Part shown: piece by piece, positions 3,624 through 51,060 of the stretch | Layout: every line of letters begins with the position of its first letter | Position numbering within the stretch: the first letter of the stretch is position 1 | From: Scyliorhinus canicula | Lineage: Eukaryota | NCBI RefSeq assembly: GCF_902713615.1 | Contig: NC_052164.1 | Coordinates: 5,102,536-5,166,535, forward strand | Direction of reading: 5' to 3' | DNA length: 64,000 nt | Notes under the pieces: model-generated | Told to the model about the DNA's origin: nothing | Seen by the model: the letters and a program-made list of their open reading frames with translations, nothing else | The model's database searches: none | Translations under genes and position numbers: made by a program

Positions 3624-6548
3624 CTCGCAGTTTCCCAATATTTATTTCACAAACTGTCAGGGTCCTTGCACCCTTATCGAATAACATTGGCACCCCGATT
3701 CACGTGACGTTTTCTTCCAATAGCCTCCTGGCAGTTGACCTAAGGTTAGAAGAACCACAGAATAATAGTGGAACGTGTGTGGATCCATCTTACATACTCA
3801 AAAGCAAATGACATGAATAGCGTTCACCACACAAGCGCAGCAGATGCCACGGCTGGTCTTGATTCCCGGCTATTTTCGACTCTAGAGGAGGGGACGAAAG
3901 AACACACCCATACACTGAGCCCTGGAAGAAAACTAACAAATTCACATGGCCAACTGCAAAACTATTTTAATCGAGATCAGATCCAGCATTAGCTCACAGC
4001 TAAATTCTTTTGGTTTAGGCAATGTTCCAAAAATGATAATTATTTAGGAAAAAAATTCAGACAAACTGGGATTGAATATCTTACCAGGGAGTTACATAAA
4101 CTTCCACAGCCAGTTCAGTTAAAATACACACAAAACATCGTTACATTTAATTTAATTGCTCCTTGTTTGATTAATTGTCATGCTGTCAATATTCTAGATT
4201 AAAAATCTGACCTACCGCTTAAAATTAGGTTTACATCTATTGTTATAAAACGGAGCTGCCAAAGTATCAACATTTATAAATGTACAGCGTTCATGGTGGG
4301 ATGAGTTTTCTCCTGAAAACATCTGGTTTAAATAGAAGGAAACTTTTGGATGTTTCAGTAGCTATGTATTCAAACTCTAATCCGAAACATACTTTTATAG
4401 TCACCATAATTTCTTGCCTAACGCGGTAATCTAGAATGCATATCTCTACACTCCTTTACACTTAAGAGGCAGCACTGATAGAATGGGAGAAGAGTGCAGA
4501 AAAACATCATAAAATGAGATGGTGTTGAGAAACAATACCCATTTTATACACAGAGATTAGACTTTCTTAACCATTTGGCACAATTGCTTTCTGAAAATAT
4601 ACACATATGTATTTAATGTGTCTGTTTTCAAGTGAGTTACTTTGTCATAGTGAAGGTGAAGAAGTAAGTGTTTTTGTTTCTAGTTTTTTCTGTCCATGTG
4701 CAAACTGGATATGTTTTTGAACGGCCCATTCTTGGCCTTGCGGCGATATTTTAGGGCCCTTTTCCTCTTCCCCGCCACAGCTTTAACTATTCATGATGGA
4801 TCGGCAAAGATACCGGGGATTGTGTTCCCCATGACCAGGATTTGAACCTCTCCCTCAACCAAGAAACAAAAAGGATAATAGGTACTGTCTTGGAAGGTGC
4901 TCTATAATTTGATGTATGAGGGGTCAGTGGACTAACAAAGATTTTTTTTCCCTCTGGTGAGACATGCCCAAGGACTCCCCGGTGCAGCTCAAACCGCGAA
5001 ACATCCCCGGCACAACCCCAAACTCTGCTCAAATATACCGAGTTTTCCTTTCTGCTCCACACTCCCACATCGTTCTCCAGCTTGTGTTTGAAGTACAATT
5101 CTAGTTTGACGCTGTTACTAAATGACCCGAAGCGCTTGCCACAATTATTAAGAACACAGCAGCAAATCGGCGAATTCTGCTCCAGAACCAACCATCTCTT
5201 TCTTGCTCTCACTCTCACTCTCTCTCTCCATAATTGTAGTTATTTTGAAATATCAATTTTGATATCTGACATCGATTAAAGCTACGTGAAGCAATATTAT
5301 TAGAATAAATGCAAGCAGCACAATGCAGATGCTTCCTTTACTGTATCGCGTGCAGTACTTCTCAGTTAAATATGACTGAACGTTTATAAAGACGCTAATG
5401 CTTTATACAATTCACATCAGCGAAATGCTCACTATCAGACGATTCGGCGTTGGAAATATATTTTTGATACCTCTTTGTGAAAGCGGGGATAAAAATGTGG
5501 CCGCAACATCGATTTTTGATTCATGGAATGTTCATTACGCTTTCACGTTTGAGTCGAATTATATTTAATTTATTCGGTATAAAATATCCAAGTAAAAGGT
5601 TGGAAAAAATACATTTAAAAGTCAAACAATGCATTCAAATGAATGCACATTTCTGGAAAAGCAAAACCTGTTTGCTACAAAATAAGGTTCAGTTGAACGA
5701 GCTACCTGCTACGAAATATATACTTTGAGACATAAAATCTAATTTTATAATTATGTAGTTTACGGTTCTGCTTATTTGCACTTCGCGGGGTTACAGCCGG
5801 GTGTCGAGTATGATCTTTGTTCTTTCAGACAGGACCAGAGTTCATAATTATTTGCAATCAGAAGATGAAATACATAATGAAATTTCAGGCTTTGCCTTCA
5901 AAGCACTCCCCGTCCTTTGCAACAGAGAAAAGCGTTGGAAAGTTTTATTTACCGATATGGACGTAAAGATAATAATAAATTATTTTACAAAATGAGCCAG
6001 CCTTCTGCTGAGTGCTGCGGCTGTATTGAAGAAAGCTGTAGATTGTAACGGAGTTTAAGCGGGCTAATAAAAATAGGAATTTACAACACTATAAATGAAT
6101 GGTTGTATCTCCAGTGATGTTTCAGTAAATATAGAGCAGAGCCAGAAAAGTCAGGCGTGCTCCAGTCGCTAGGTGCCACCATGTTTCGGAGAAACACAGA
6201 GCCTTAGAGAGCAATATCCTCACATTTCACTCTCCATAATCCCGACTAGCAGATCTCAAATCCTTACAGAGCTGAACAACGAAGGGGCCATTTGAATGTC
6301 CGAAATGTGTTAAATATATAGAAAACAAGCATCCTATCTAATGGGACAACAATAGGGGAAGTCGTCATACATCTTAAATTATAGAGCACCGGGTAAGACG
6401 TCCACGTAAATATGTCTTATATCACAGCTGAGAGCTTGGTTTTGAAAAATACTCCAAATTAGCCCCCCAAAAGGCCCGAGGACCGGGCTCCGTGTTGAAT
6501 TCAGATGCAATGTGAAACAGTCGCTGCGTGAAAGGAAGCTATAGCTTG

Positions 6549-6565
6549 TGAACTCTTCTTGAACC
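6549..6565 (-). promoter_or_regulatory. DR5 retinoic acid response element upstream of HoxB3
   Basis: GGTTCA-agaag-AGTTCA on the minus strand, matching the recalled PG3 5' RARE. A Pbx/Hox-type TGATTTATGA lies next to it at 6584-6593. Confidence 0.85.
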
Positions 6566-8709
6566 GAGATTGAAGTCATATGGTCATAAATCACTGGGAC
6601 ATATACTCCGCCATTCACGAGTGATAGCCTATTTGAGTCCAGCTTACCTTAGCCACTGACGATAGAAGCAGAGCAAGACATAATATTTCAGATTCACCAC
6701 GCAATCGATAAGCAGGAGTTCCCAAATTCTTTTATATACATATAAAAAGGAAGGATAAAACAGCTGGTTATGGCGCTGAAATTCACTCGCTGAAGGCAAC
6801 GGCAAAGAAAGGCGAGATGGTACAGCTTCAAAGAACTGTAGAAAGCTCAAGGCTTGAATGGACAGCCCTGATATTATTGAGCCCTAGACTGGTACGCCCT
6901 ACTCACAGATAACAATGGTTTCTCAGCATTACAGGGAAGAGTGACTAGAAAGGAAACCCATATATTCGGTATGTTTGTTATGAATACGTATGTATATATA
7001 TATTAGAAGCACGGTTTTAAGGGGGAAAACGATTTCTTTCCTGAGTGCTCGGCAGGCAACGAGTGTTAATCCCCTCGAAACACAGCGTCACAAGTGAAAA
7101 ATTATGCTAATTAGCGTGGTGGTGGACAAGGCCTAGACTAAGATGGCAAGCTCGCTGTTTGCTTCACGTGTTTGGCAATTAAGTGTCAGTTTACGTTAAT
7201 ATCTTTTTCAAGCAAAGTGCAGCCGTTCACCATTCAAAATATTAATAAAATATATTATTAACAATAAAGTGAACTTCTCATTGCACGACTCCGCGAATAA
7301 ATATATTTCCATCTATCGCCTTGTTTACTGAACTCGTGAACGGAATCGTTAATTAATAATTTATTCACGACAAAAAAAAACTTTAGTGTCCGACTGGGTG
7401 CGGTAGAGAAAAAGAAAATGGACGCAGCGTAGGGGGAAGGAGGAGGTCATTCTGGTGTGTTGAACATGTAACAACGCACAAGATGCAACAACCTCTCTAT
7501 AAACTTTTAATGTAGACTATGTGCTGCACTTGTTTGGACACTTGAGGTGTTTAAAAAAAAAATAAAAACAATTCATTCCTGACAATGGGGGTGGGGGTGG
7601 GGGGTGATTGTCACTTGAGTGAAAGCCAATGAAAAAAGAATTTGGATCTTAAGTTCTTTTTTATGCATGCCACTGCTTCTGTCGTTTATGGCTACGTAAG
7701 ATTTATGACTCCATGGCACTGTAGCTGTAAACAGTGTAAAAGGGATAGATGTTGCACTAGTTCAGTACATGAAAGGAGAGCCAGAATGGCGTAGGAGGCA
7801 GGCGGGCGAAAGAATCTCCAACTCTGCAACTTTTATTATGCCTTCATACTATTCTCTTTTTTTTGCCTGCTATGTCTTTTTGGGGGTGTTTAAAAAGCAG
7901 TTCACAAGTCCGAGACCTCGTAGATCCTTCACTTCTGGTGGAATAAGGGAGGAGACGAACGGATTGATTTTTGTTAACGTGCAGTGATTTTCTATAACAT
8001 GCTCAGCTGCCAAAGGTATAACTTCACAAAGTGAGACTCAATTTTTTGGCGGCGTTAAAGAAACGAGTTTCCTCTGCTTAGAAATAGGACAGCTTGCAGA
8101 ACGTCAGACAGTGCCGTATGTTATTTTTCCCATTGTGACATGGCTGAATAAATAACATTGCAACTTCGTACCTTGTATGACTGACCGACTTTCGGTAATC
8201 ACATTTTCCTGCACCTATTATTTTGCTTGTAATCTACTTCCGCGACATGGAGAAGAGTCAGTTTCACCTCAGTGATTTCAACAAGGAACGTTTTTTAAAC
8301 ATTTGCTCCTGGATGGAAATCACAACTTTCGCCAATTTTGAAATGCAGAAATTTTAATTTGAACTTTCGTTTGGTGGTAAGATATTTGAACTTGCTTATG
8401 CGGTTTCAATTTTTTTCTGTAGAGTTCCTGTAGAATAAATGATCCCAGATCATTGTCAACAAACTAGATCATTTAAAACTAAATCAGACTTTAACCAAAA
8501 AAATGACCATTGAAACCTTTGAACGTGATATTAAGGTGTCATGTAGCTTAATAAGGTAAACACTAAATACATCTATACAATGTATGTCTTTCTATCAAAC
8601 AATAGTTCTATCGGCCTAACTATCTATTTTTCCATCTATCTGATAGATAAACAGAACACTGAATTGTGGGAAATGGTTCAGGTATTAAAATGAATATAAT
8701 GTGACTTAC

Positions 8710-8776
8710 CGCAGAATTGTTGCTAGTCCTTGAGCCAAGGTGTAGCTGCTGACGGGGTCTTTATAAAGAGCCAAGA
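8710..8776 (-). other. Probable non-coding 5'UTR exon of HoxB3 (67 nt)
   Basis: Long polypyrimidine tract gtctttttcttcccctttttttgcAG| upstream and consensus donor GCG|gtaagt downstream; no ATG inside. Confidence 0.65.
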
Positions 8777-50460: not shown

Positions 50461-50503
50461 CGGTCCCTCTAAAAGAATTCATTTTATGTGACTTTTCACA
50501 TAC

Positions 50504-50903
50504 CTGAGCTCTTCATCCAAGGGTAGATGCGGAAGTTCTCGGACTGGGGGTCTGCCTCTCTTTGCTCCGACTTGCTGCAAGTCTGCTTGCAAGAGTCTCC
50601 AGCGCCGCACATCAGTGATGAAATGTTGTGATCGAATGAAGAGCAGTGCATGTTAAAGGAGTTCGCGTTGAGGCCATAAGGAGACGTGTACATGGTCGGG
50701 GTCTGGTGGTGAAGGCTGTTGGAAGCGCTGTACAAACCCGGCACAGTGGCTGCGTAAGAAGCGGACCCTGAGCCATAGCCCGACCGCTGGGAGTTTGAGG
50801 CAAAGGCGCAAGAAGTTGGTTCCGAAAATACCCCCGTTGGAAAAACAGAAGTTCCGGCTGTATATTTCGAAAATAAAGCATTCGCATAATACAATGAACT
50901 CAT
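50504..50903 (-). CDS. hoxb7: HoxB7 exon 1
   Basis: [14 protein letters not shown] start (B7-type); [11 protein letters not shown] hexapeptide; donor TCAG|gtatgt at 50503; 400 nt. Confidence 0.96.
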
Positions 50904-51019
50904 AATTTGGCTGGTGATTTGTAGGCCGGGACGTTTCAGTGTCGGTTTTACGAGGTACGGTGATATATTACGGAATTAGAGTCCAGATTTACACCAAAAG
51001 AACCCCCTTTTTCCTCCCG

Positions 51020-51060
51020 ATGCACGTGATCTCGGCACGTGACACTGGGGGCCAATGAGA
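51020..51060 (-). promoter_or_regulatory. HoxB7 proximal promoter (two E-boxes plus CCAAT)
   Basis: CACGTG at 51023-51028 and 51036-51041; CCAAT at 51052-51056. Confidence 0.65.

Follow-up and report, generated by a model that had tools for sequence, protein, structure and literature searches.

A 64,000-nucleotide stretch of the genome of the shark Scyliorhinus canicula (contig NC_052164.1, positions 5,102,536 to 5,166,535; hereafter the window), which carries genes of the HoxB cluster, holds seven copies of a composite element in which a CCAAT-type box and an E-box are separated by 10-12 bp. Five of the copies lie in front of the genes b3 to b7 and two lie away from any gene start, one 3' of b5 (orphan 1) and the other between b7 and b6 (orphan 2). 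The copies occur non-randomly, with fixed orientation and spacing, they are conserved across jawed vertebrates, and the element is present in HoxA as well as in HoxB. We consider it probable, at roughly 70%, that they are ancient promoter-proximal composites of the NF-Y/USF type, five in the proximal promoters of b3 to b7 and two at intergenic promoters; the proteins that bind them and the transcription starts in the shark are those that we infer by analogy.

An initial annotation of the window had listed the seven copies as one repeated promoter module, and its coordinates, letters and spacers were all reproduced (Table 1). The genes lie on the minus strand; read in their direction of transcription, every copy is AYTGG-N10-12-CANNTG, with spacers of 10, 10, 11, 10, 12, 11 and 10 nt at b3, b4, orphan 1, b5, b6, orphan 2 and b7, respectively, and with the same polarity in all seven, the E-box lying 10-12 bp on the 5' side of the CCAAT or CCAGT box. 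A scan of the full window for CANNTG-N10-12-CCART gave nine matches on the plus strand versus one on the minus strand, and the reverse order, CCART-N10-12-CANNTG, gave one match on each strand; the spacing between CANNTG and CCART peaks at 10-12 nt, with five matches at 10 nt and two each at 11 and 12 nt. In 500 trials of dinucleotide-preserving shuffling within 1-kb blocks, the loose pattern was found 1.9 times on average and six times at most, and none of the trials reached the nine matches observed, while the strict CACGTG version was observed four times as against 0.06 in the shuffles. The comparison with shuffled controls, which had been proposed together with the initial annotation and was run here on the window, thus bears out a composite frequency above background. 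The loose pattern was defined after the sequence had been read, and independent confirmation was therefore sought in other species.

For this purpose orthologous DNA was fetched by exact protein look-ups, comprising the b8-b7-b6 regions of the elephant shark (a chimaera; L001), gar (L002) and the turtle Emydura (L003), the b6-b5 regions of gar (L004) and the turtle Terrapene (L005), b4 of the soft-shell turtle Pelodiscus (L006), the a9-a7-a6 region of pigeon HoxA (L007), snake b3 (L008), and two short contigs (L009, L010) of a relative with 88% protein identity in b3 exon 1. All three of L001-L003 contain the b7, orphan 2 and b6 copies, in matching order, strand and spacing (N10 or N12 for b7, N11 for orphan 2, and N12 for b6), and the b5, orphan 1 and b6 copies are kept in L004 and L005. 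Altogether, six of the seven copies keep their position, orientation and spacing in chimaera, gar and/or turtle, with spacing generally kept for each copy across species, and the b3 copy is found whole only in the relative represented by L009/L010. Judged by these alignments, the module goes back to the ancestor shared by sharks and mammals and has thus been conserved for more than 400 million years. In the b7 and orphan 2 alignments the motif columns are invariant while the spacers vary, which is the pattern to be expected of two protein footprints: at b7 (shark, chimaera, gar and turtle) the invariant columns are 5/5 in CCAAT, 6/6 in the E-box and 2/12 in the spacer, which is 10 or 12 nt long, and at orphan 2 (chimaera, gar, turtle and pigeon HoxA) they are 5/5 in CCAAT, 4/11 in the spacer, always of 11 nt, and 6/6 in the E-box. 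Pigeon HoxA carries the same three positional copies, before a7, between a7 and a6, and before a6, and Hoxa7 has the layout of b7. Since the b7, orphan 2 and b6 copies are found in both HoxB and pigeon HoxA, they predate the HoxA/HoxB duplication. In pigeon Hoxa9 there is also a composite about 100 nt upstream of the ATG, in the opposite orientation (CACGTG-N10-CCAAT on the gene strand; L007:1081-1101).

Table 1. Copies of the composite and other features of the window. Sequences are given on the gene strand unless otherwise stated, a slash marks a splice junction, and for the copies in front of genes the first distance is that of AYTGG from the start codon.
Feature	Position	Strand	Sequence	Place and remarks
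b3 copy	3686..3721 (part listed first, 3701-3721)	(-)		98 to 63 nt upstream of b3 ATG, just downstream of acceptor
Likely b3 3' splice site (AG)	3740..3741	(-)	CTAACCTTAG/GTCAACT	predicted from sequence
Extra loose-pattern match	9450-9472	(+)		absent from the initial annotation
b4 copy	23704..23724	(-)	ATTGGCTGCCGGTGTCACATG	131-111 nt upstream of b4 ATG
mir-10 precursor	24991-25066	(-)		Rfam RF00104, 79.8 bits; 1.4 kb upstream of b4 start codon
TATA-like element	35152..35159	(-)	ATATATTT	47 nt downstream of orphan 1 E-box, Hox-sense strand; putative function
Orphan 1	35207..35228	(.)	ACTGGCTCTCAAAAGTCACGTG	~1.6 kb downstream of b5 stop codon
TATA-/GATA-like element	35277..35283	(+)	ATAAATA (antisense strand)	~50 nt downstream of orphan 1 CCAGT; putative function
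b5 copy	38494..38514	(-)	ACTGGTCAACAAAAGCACGTG	165-145 nt upstream of b5 ATG
b6 copy	42159..42181	(-)	ATTGGTCAGTCGATGATCAGATG	146-124 nt upstream of b6 ATG
Candidate splice donor	46317..46318	(-)	CAAAG/GTAAGA	would end an exon begun at orphan 2; predicted for shark
TATA-like element	46764..46769	(-)	TATATT	44 nt downstream of orphan 2 E-box, sense strand; putative function
Orphan 2	46813..46834	(-)	ATTGGCCGCTGCCGGTCATGTG	between b7 and b6
b7 copy	51023..51056 (E-box/CCAAT, 51036-51056)	(-)	ATTGGCCCCCAGTGTCACGTG	153-120 nt upstream of b7 ATG
Extra loose-pattern match	55727-55747	(+)		absent from the initial annotation

The two boxes differ among copies in their agreement with known binding sites. 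The E-box core is CACGTG in b3, b5, b7 and orphan 1, CACATG/CATGTG in b4 and orphan 2, and CAGATG in b6, and it is extended to GTCAYGTG in five copies. Flanks of the NF-Y type, whose consensus is RRCCAATSR, are found in b4, b6, b7 and orphan 2; in b3 the pentamer is intact with weaker flanks, and b5 and orphan 1 have CCAGT. The idea of a single E-box-CCA(A/G)T module in all seven copies holds for their geometry and their association with promoters, but the CCAGT of b5 and orphan 1 is no canonical NF-Y site and the b6 E-box is not of the USF type. The 10-12 bp that had been given as the spacing of NF-Y and USF agrees with the published genome-wide arrangement (PMC3730095, PMC4889920), and the description of the module as one helical turn applies to the spacer only, since E-box and CCAAT are 15.5-17.5 bp apart from centre to centre. 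When the flanks of the seven copies were aligned with each other, nothing alignable was found outside the motifs, so that there is no sequence evidence for their descent from one ancestral unit, nor for the proposed inheritance through tandem duplications; what the comparisons indicate on the origin of the unit is limited to an age older than the HoxA/HoxB duplication.

The b4 copy can be set against an experimentally studied promoter. The promoter of human HOXB4, a segment of 99 bp between -153 and -55 relative to the ATG, depends on ATTGGCT (HXRE-1) and an E box (HXRE-2), the latter bound by USF1/2; mutation of ATTGGCT or of the E box lowers promoter activity by 60-98%, and the transcription start sites lie 65-90 nt 5' of the ATG (Giannola 2000, PMC2193192). 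According to PMC3675019, which cites later work assigning HXRE-1 to NF-Y (Zhu 2003), HOXB4 is a target of an NF-Y/USF complex. In the shark b4 copy the ATTGGCT is identical and likewise precedes an E-box, the copy lies within the span of the human promoter, and the E-box of shark and turtle is CACATG instead of CACGTG, one base apart. In Pelodiscus, ATTGGCCGCCGCTGTCACATG is found 146 nt upstream of the b4 ATG, so that across species ATTGGCT and an E box are kept in the last 150 nt or so before the ATG. By its letters and its place, the b4 copy is the counterpart of HXRE-1/HXRE-2. The statement of the initial annotation that USF and NF-Y regulate HOXB4 and HOXB7 accordingly has experimental backing for HOXB4, and for HOXB7 it goes back to a study by Meccia (2003) that PMC3976385 cites for regulation by NF-Y and USF-1.

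Among the other copies in front of genes, that of b7 has a second E-box, ATCACGTG, 7 nt beyond the first, which is likewise kept in shark, chimaera, gar and turtle, and that of b5 is identical at 21 of 21 nt in gar and turtle. Downstream of the b5 E-box, at a distance of about 17 nt (38467-38476), there is a perfect CArG box, CCATATTTGG on the gene strand, which is unchanged in gar and turtle and could possibly be an SRF site in the Hoxb5 promoter. The b6 copy combines a CCAAT box with good NF-Y flanks with an E-box of non-USF type, and its N12 spacing recurs in chimaera, gar, two turtles and pigeon Hoxa6. The b6 E-box also contains an ATG (CAGATGG) from which, in shark and chimaera, an open frame runs into Hoxb6 (window 42035-42221), and the called elephant-shark Hoxb6 product of 272 amino acids begins at this ATG (L001:18671). 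We rejected an N-terminally extended Hoxb6 as a conserved feature, as in gar and turtle this ATG is out of frame with stops, and the extension is probably a gene-calling artefact.

In the b3 copy the gene strand reads ATTGG-N10-CACGTG-N10-CCAAT, a mirror-symmetric arrangement with a CCAAT box on either side of one E-box, each 10 nt from CACGTG and in the polarity of the NF-Y/USF composite, such that NF-Y could be seated on both sides of one USF dimer. This copy is identical in L009/L010. The acceptor that had been proposed at 3741-3740 on the minus strand proved to be an AG accompanied by a CTAAC branch-point-like sequence and a pyrimidine tract; it is identical in L009/L010, and the snake has CTAACCTTTCAG/GTCAGCT. 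Because of the position of this acceptor the b3 copy is likely to be inside an exon of spliced b3 transcripts, a position from which the initial annotation had proposed a possible internal promoter. The snake keeps the acceptor and the E-box, as GTCACGTGA, and has lost both CCAAT boxes.

The two copies without a gene both lie in ultraconserved blocks. That of orphan 2 includes 46847-46921, just upstream on the gene strand, and its alignment among shark, chimaera, gar and turtle HoxB and pigeon HoxA has a mean column identity of 76%, the pigeon copy being found 2.35 kb after the a7 stop codon. In mouse, a distal promoter named D2 has been mapped by 5' rapid amplification of cDNA ends to the Hoxa6-Hoxa7 intergenic region, with a transcription start site 2.3 kb 3' of Hoxa7; the surrounding sequence is highly conserved, and D2, which is the source of long Hoxa5/Hoxa6 transcripts, proved active as a promoter in transgenic embryos (Coulombe et al. 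2010, PMC2868907). Orphan 2 resembles D2 in its relative place, about 2.3 kb 3' of Hox7, and in its conserved block, and at the D2 position pigeon HoxA aligns with the orphan 2 block, including ATTGG-N11-GTCATGTG. D2 was mapped in HoxA and not in HoxB, PMC2868907 names no CCAAT box or E-box, and the likeness is drawn through the pigeon sequence. Based on position and on the alignment to HoxA, orphan 2 probably corresponds, in HoxB, to the HoxA block in which the D2 distal promoter of mouse lies. The putative TATA-like element downstream of orphan 2 appears as TATATT or ATATAA in the HoxB sequences and is not kept in pigeon HoxA. In the Emydura sequence, the called b6 gene opens with a mini-exon, ATGGACGTCAAAAG/GTAAGG, which follows the orphan 2 copy of that sequence at a distance of about 550 nt. 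This mini-exon (L003:16774-16793) consists of ATG plus 11 nt followed by GTAAGG, and at the matching place (46312-46340) the window has a similar short ATG...AAAG/GTAAGA, a hint that long b6 transcripts may have a conserved 5' exon. In addition, 0.52-0.79 of the 476 nt downstream of orphan 2 is covered by sequencing runs, only guessed to be RNA, that cover 0.26-0.36 of the surrounding 6 kb, about half that share. The turtle exon and this coverage are a weak sign of a transcription start near orphan 2.

Orphan 1 is at the centre of an ultraconserved block of about 200 bp that is ~90% identical among shark, gar and turtle. The copy itself is identical in turtle and has one change in gar (invariant columns 5/5 in CCAGT, 10/11 in the spacer and 6/6 in the E-box). 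The TATA-like ATATATTT on its Hox-sense side is invariant in the three species, and of the element on the antisense side the core AGATAAA is kept in gar and turtle; a TATA box has been reported at +50 from CCAAT (PMC3730095), and the distance on the antisense side of orphan 1 fits. Orphan 1 is flanked by CDX-type CCATAAA sequences, which gar and turtle have on both strands and the shark on one. In mammals, the HOXB-AS3/Hoxb5os promoter starts an antisense transcript ~900 nt 3' of HOXB5, is conserved to elephant shark, resembles the HOXA-AS3 promoter, and has CDX sites on both strands (Degani et al. 2021, PMC8330917). Orphan 1 is likened to it by position, 3' of Hoxb5, and shares with it the conservation in cartilaginous fish and the adjoining CDX-type sites, of which the shark has one of two intact; the HOXB-AS3 paper stresses the CDX sites and leaves the E-box-CCAGT pair unmentioned, and its transcript is antisense to the Hox genes. 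Because conserved TATA-like elements are found 47-50 nt away on both sides, orphan 1 is possibly a two-way promoter, for a HOXB-AS3-like antisense transcript and maybe for sense long transcripts. The suggestion of the initial annotation that the gene-less copies mark hidden start sites is thus plausible, in that both blocks correspond by position to mammalian promoters (PMC2868907, PMC8330917), although in mammals these are not hidden.

In the mechanism that we propose, the inverted CCAAT box (ATTGG) on the gene strand, followed after 10-12 bp by an E-box of the basic helix-loop-helix leucine zipper (bHLH-ZIP) type, mostly GTCAYGTG, would be occupied by NF-Y and by a USF1/2 dimer, respectively. 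A contact between the USF-specific region and NF-Y would allow cooperative binding only at about 10-12 bp, and together the two factors may set the basal competence of TATA-poor Hox promoters. By analogy with HOXB4, transcription would start about 40-60 nt downstream of each E-box. Orphan 2 may serve a D2-like promoter for long sense transcripts, and orphan 1 a HOXB-AS3-type antisense promoter, possibly two-way, while the CCAGT copies (b5 and orphan 1) and the b6 E-box probably have a different or weaker partner. Such a scheme is consistent with the finding that E boxes lie at -12/-11 of CCAAT, specific to the CCAAT orientation, where USF1 or MAX binds (Fleming et al. 2013, PMC3730095), with the E-box-CCAAT distance of 10-12 bp found with USF1/2 (Dolfini et al. 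2016, PMC4889920), and with the report that the USF-specific region touches NF-Y, which explains the 10-12 bp limit (bioRxiv 10.64898/2026.02.16.706105).

Several observations weigh against NF-Y and USF as the partners of every copy. NF-Y is generally held to need all five bases of CCAAT, and b5 and orphan 1 carry a CCAGT that is conserved as such in gar and turtle; since it is kept in all species examined, NF-Y binding at these two copies is doubtful. The core of the b6 E-box varies by species (CAGATG, CATATG or CAGCTG) and is never a USF core. A conserved splice acceptor precedes the b3 copy, and the snake has lost the CCAAT boxes of this copy. ATTGGC and CTGGC are also NFI half-sites, and HXRE-1 (ATTGGCT) was first called an NF1 site (PMC2193192). 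Finally, the b8 proximal region (53541-53900) is conserved, with 89% identity to chimaera and ~80% to gar and turtle, and is without the module, having a single forward CCAAT at -266 and no E-box, so the module is not universal in the cluster.

Three other explanations were weighed. That two short and common motifs co-occur by chance and were singled out afterwards by a loosened pattern could be argued from the late definition of the pattern, from the ~1.9 matches expected, and from the plus-strand matches at 9450 and 55727, which are probably due to chance, as two such matches fit the chance expectation of about two; the match at 55727 has no detectable counterpart in chimaera, gar or turtle and was rejected as a b8 promoter copy, being 2.2 kb from the ATG and not conserved. 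Against this stand the failure of all 500 shuffles to reach nine matches, the excess of the strict form (4 vs 0.06), the single match for each of the other three arrangements, and the six copies kept in place, orientation and spacing over more than 400 million years with variable spacers, although the b3 copy is whole only in a close relative. We give chance next to no credence, and in our view it is already refuted by the conservation data. A more serious alternative is that the sites are real and that other proteins bind some or all of the copies, such as NFI or some CCAGT-binding protein at the AYTGG(C) part, MITF/TFE, MAX/MYC or CLOCK-type proteins at the E-boxes, and class A/II bHLH proteins at b6, in which case the seven copies would not be one functional class. 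It would account for the CCAGT kept in b5 and orphan 1, for the variable non-USF core of b6, and for the TTGGC or TGGC in b4, b7, orphan 2 and orphan 1, and it is favoured by the binding of MITF to HXRE-2 in vitro and by the first reading of HXRE-1 as an NF1 site (PMC2193192). But the partners shown for HOXB4 are USF1/2 and, as far as the cited account goes, NF-Y (PMC2193192; PMC3675019), and the geometry of 10-12 bp with the E-box 5' of CCAAT is that of the NF-Y/USF pair, four copies having full NF-Y flanks; we regard other binders as unlikely. A TALE/NF-Y composite of DECA and CCAAT was rejected, since the DECA motif is absent at the right distance.

It is also conceivable that the composites are mainly chromatin elements (pioneer, bookmark or barrier sites keeping Hox promoters open in a Polycomb domain) or drivers of divergent antisense transcription, and not parts of the core promoter that determine where transcription starts. 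NF-Y and USF1 belong to a small group of factors that bind their motifs in chromatin that is unmodified or marked by trimethylation of histone H3 lysine 27 (H3K27me3) (PMC3730095), USF1 recruits SET1A and trimethylation of H3 lysine 4 (H3K4me3) to the HoxB4 promoter (PMC3675019), all seven copies face the antisense strand when read in the forward-CCAAT sense, and orphan 1 has its TATA-like element ~50 nt downstream on the strand where HOXB-AS3 starts in mammals. The same flipped orientation, however, drives sense transcription from the 99-bp human HOXB4 promoter in plain reporter assays (PMC2193192), and a distance of 98-165 nt from the ATGs fits ordinary proximal promoters, which makes such a role improbable as the main one. 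Beyond the interpretation as NF-Y/USF-type promoter composites, a bolder version can be formulated, in which ATTGG-N10-12-E-box would be the ancestral core-promoter grammar of central Hox genes, older than the two rounds of genome duplication (2R) and perhaps than the tandem duplications; NF-Y and USF would act as a cluster-wide bookmark that keeps promoters, including the intergenic sense and antisense ones, ready for colinear activation in a Polycomb domain, and the CCAGT form would be a separate variant of the same age, bound by a partner of its own. A bookmark role is possible because both factors bind in silent chromatin, and we hold this extended version to be speculative and rather doubtful.

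As to the locus, the window has seven homeoboxes on the minus strand, of Hox3, 4, 5, 6, 7, 8 and 9 from low to high coordinates, with start codons at 3623 (b3), 23593 (b4), 38349 (b5), 42035 (b6), 50903 (b7) and 53540 (b8) and with first exons containing hexapeptides; the b9 promoter is beyond the window end. The mir-10 precursor is positioned upstream of b4, where mir-10a of HoxB would be expected. By its gene content and mir-10 the window is a HoxB cluster, and the exon-1 proteins, which are closest to those of sharks, with identities of 98% to Mustelus (Hoxb5), 94% to Stegostoma (Hoxb4) and 95% to Heterodontus (Hoxb7), mark it as that of an elasmobranch.

In literature searches we found no paper describing the composite as a cluster-wide Hox promoter feature. 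The composite itself, the promoters of HOXB4 and HOXB7, D2 and the promoter of HOXB-AS3 are known parts; less described is that the composite recurs along the cluster in one fixed polarity, that two intergenic promoters also have it, and that it is conserved as far as sharks. A factor pair studied gene by gene in human blood cells, at HOXB4 and HOXB7, would thereby become part of a repeated Hox layout, of fixed orientation and spacing, that covers most central HoxB and HoxA promoters plus two intergenic ones. This layout offers a testable handle on how basal promoter competence is set along the Hox cluster, and precise sites to mutate in the study of long polycistronic and antisense Hox transcripts.

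With the genome-wide NF-Y/USF composite, the copies of the window share the E-box 5' of CCAAT, the orientation-specific distance of 10-12 bp, CACGTG in four copies and NF-Y flanks in four; they differ from it in the CCAGT of two copies, the CAYRTG cores of two and the CAGATG of b6. Many of the human composites are in LTR12 repeats, whereas the shark copies are single-copy and kept since the jawed-vertebrate ancestor. The HOXB7 promoter, for which the citing source names NF-Y, YY1, Sp1 and USF-1 (Meccia et al. 2003, pmid 12697323), resembles b7 in the factors named, b7 having a single CCAAT box and a pair of USF-type E-boxes that do not vary between shark and turtle. Taken together, these comparisons suggest an extension of known biology and not a new kind of element, namely a deeply conserved promoter grammar.

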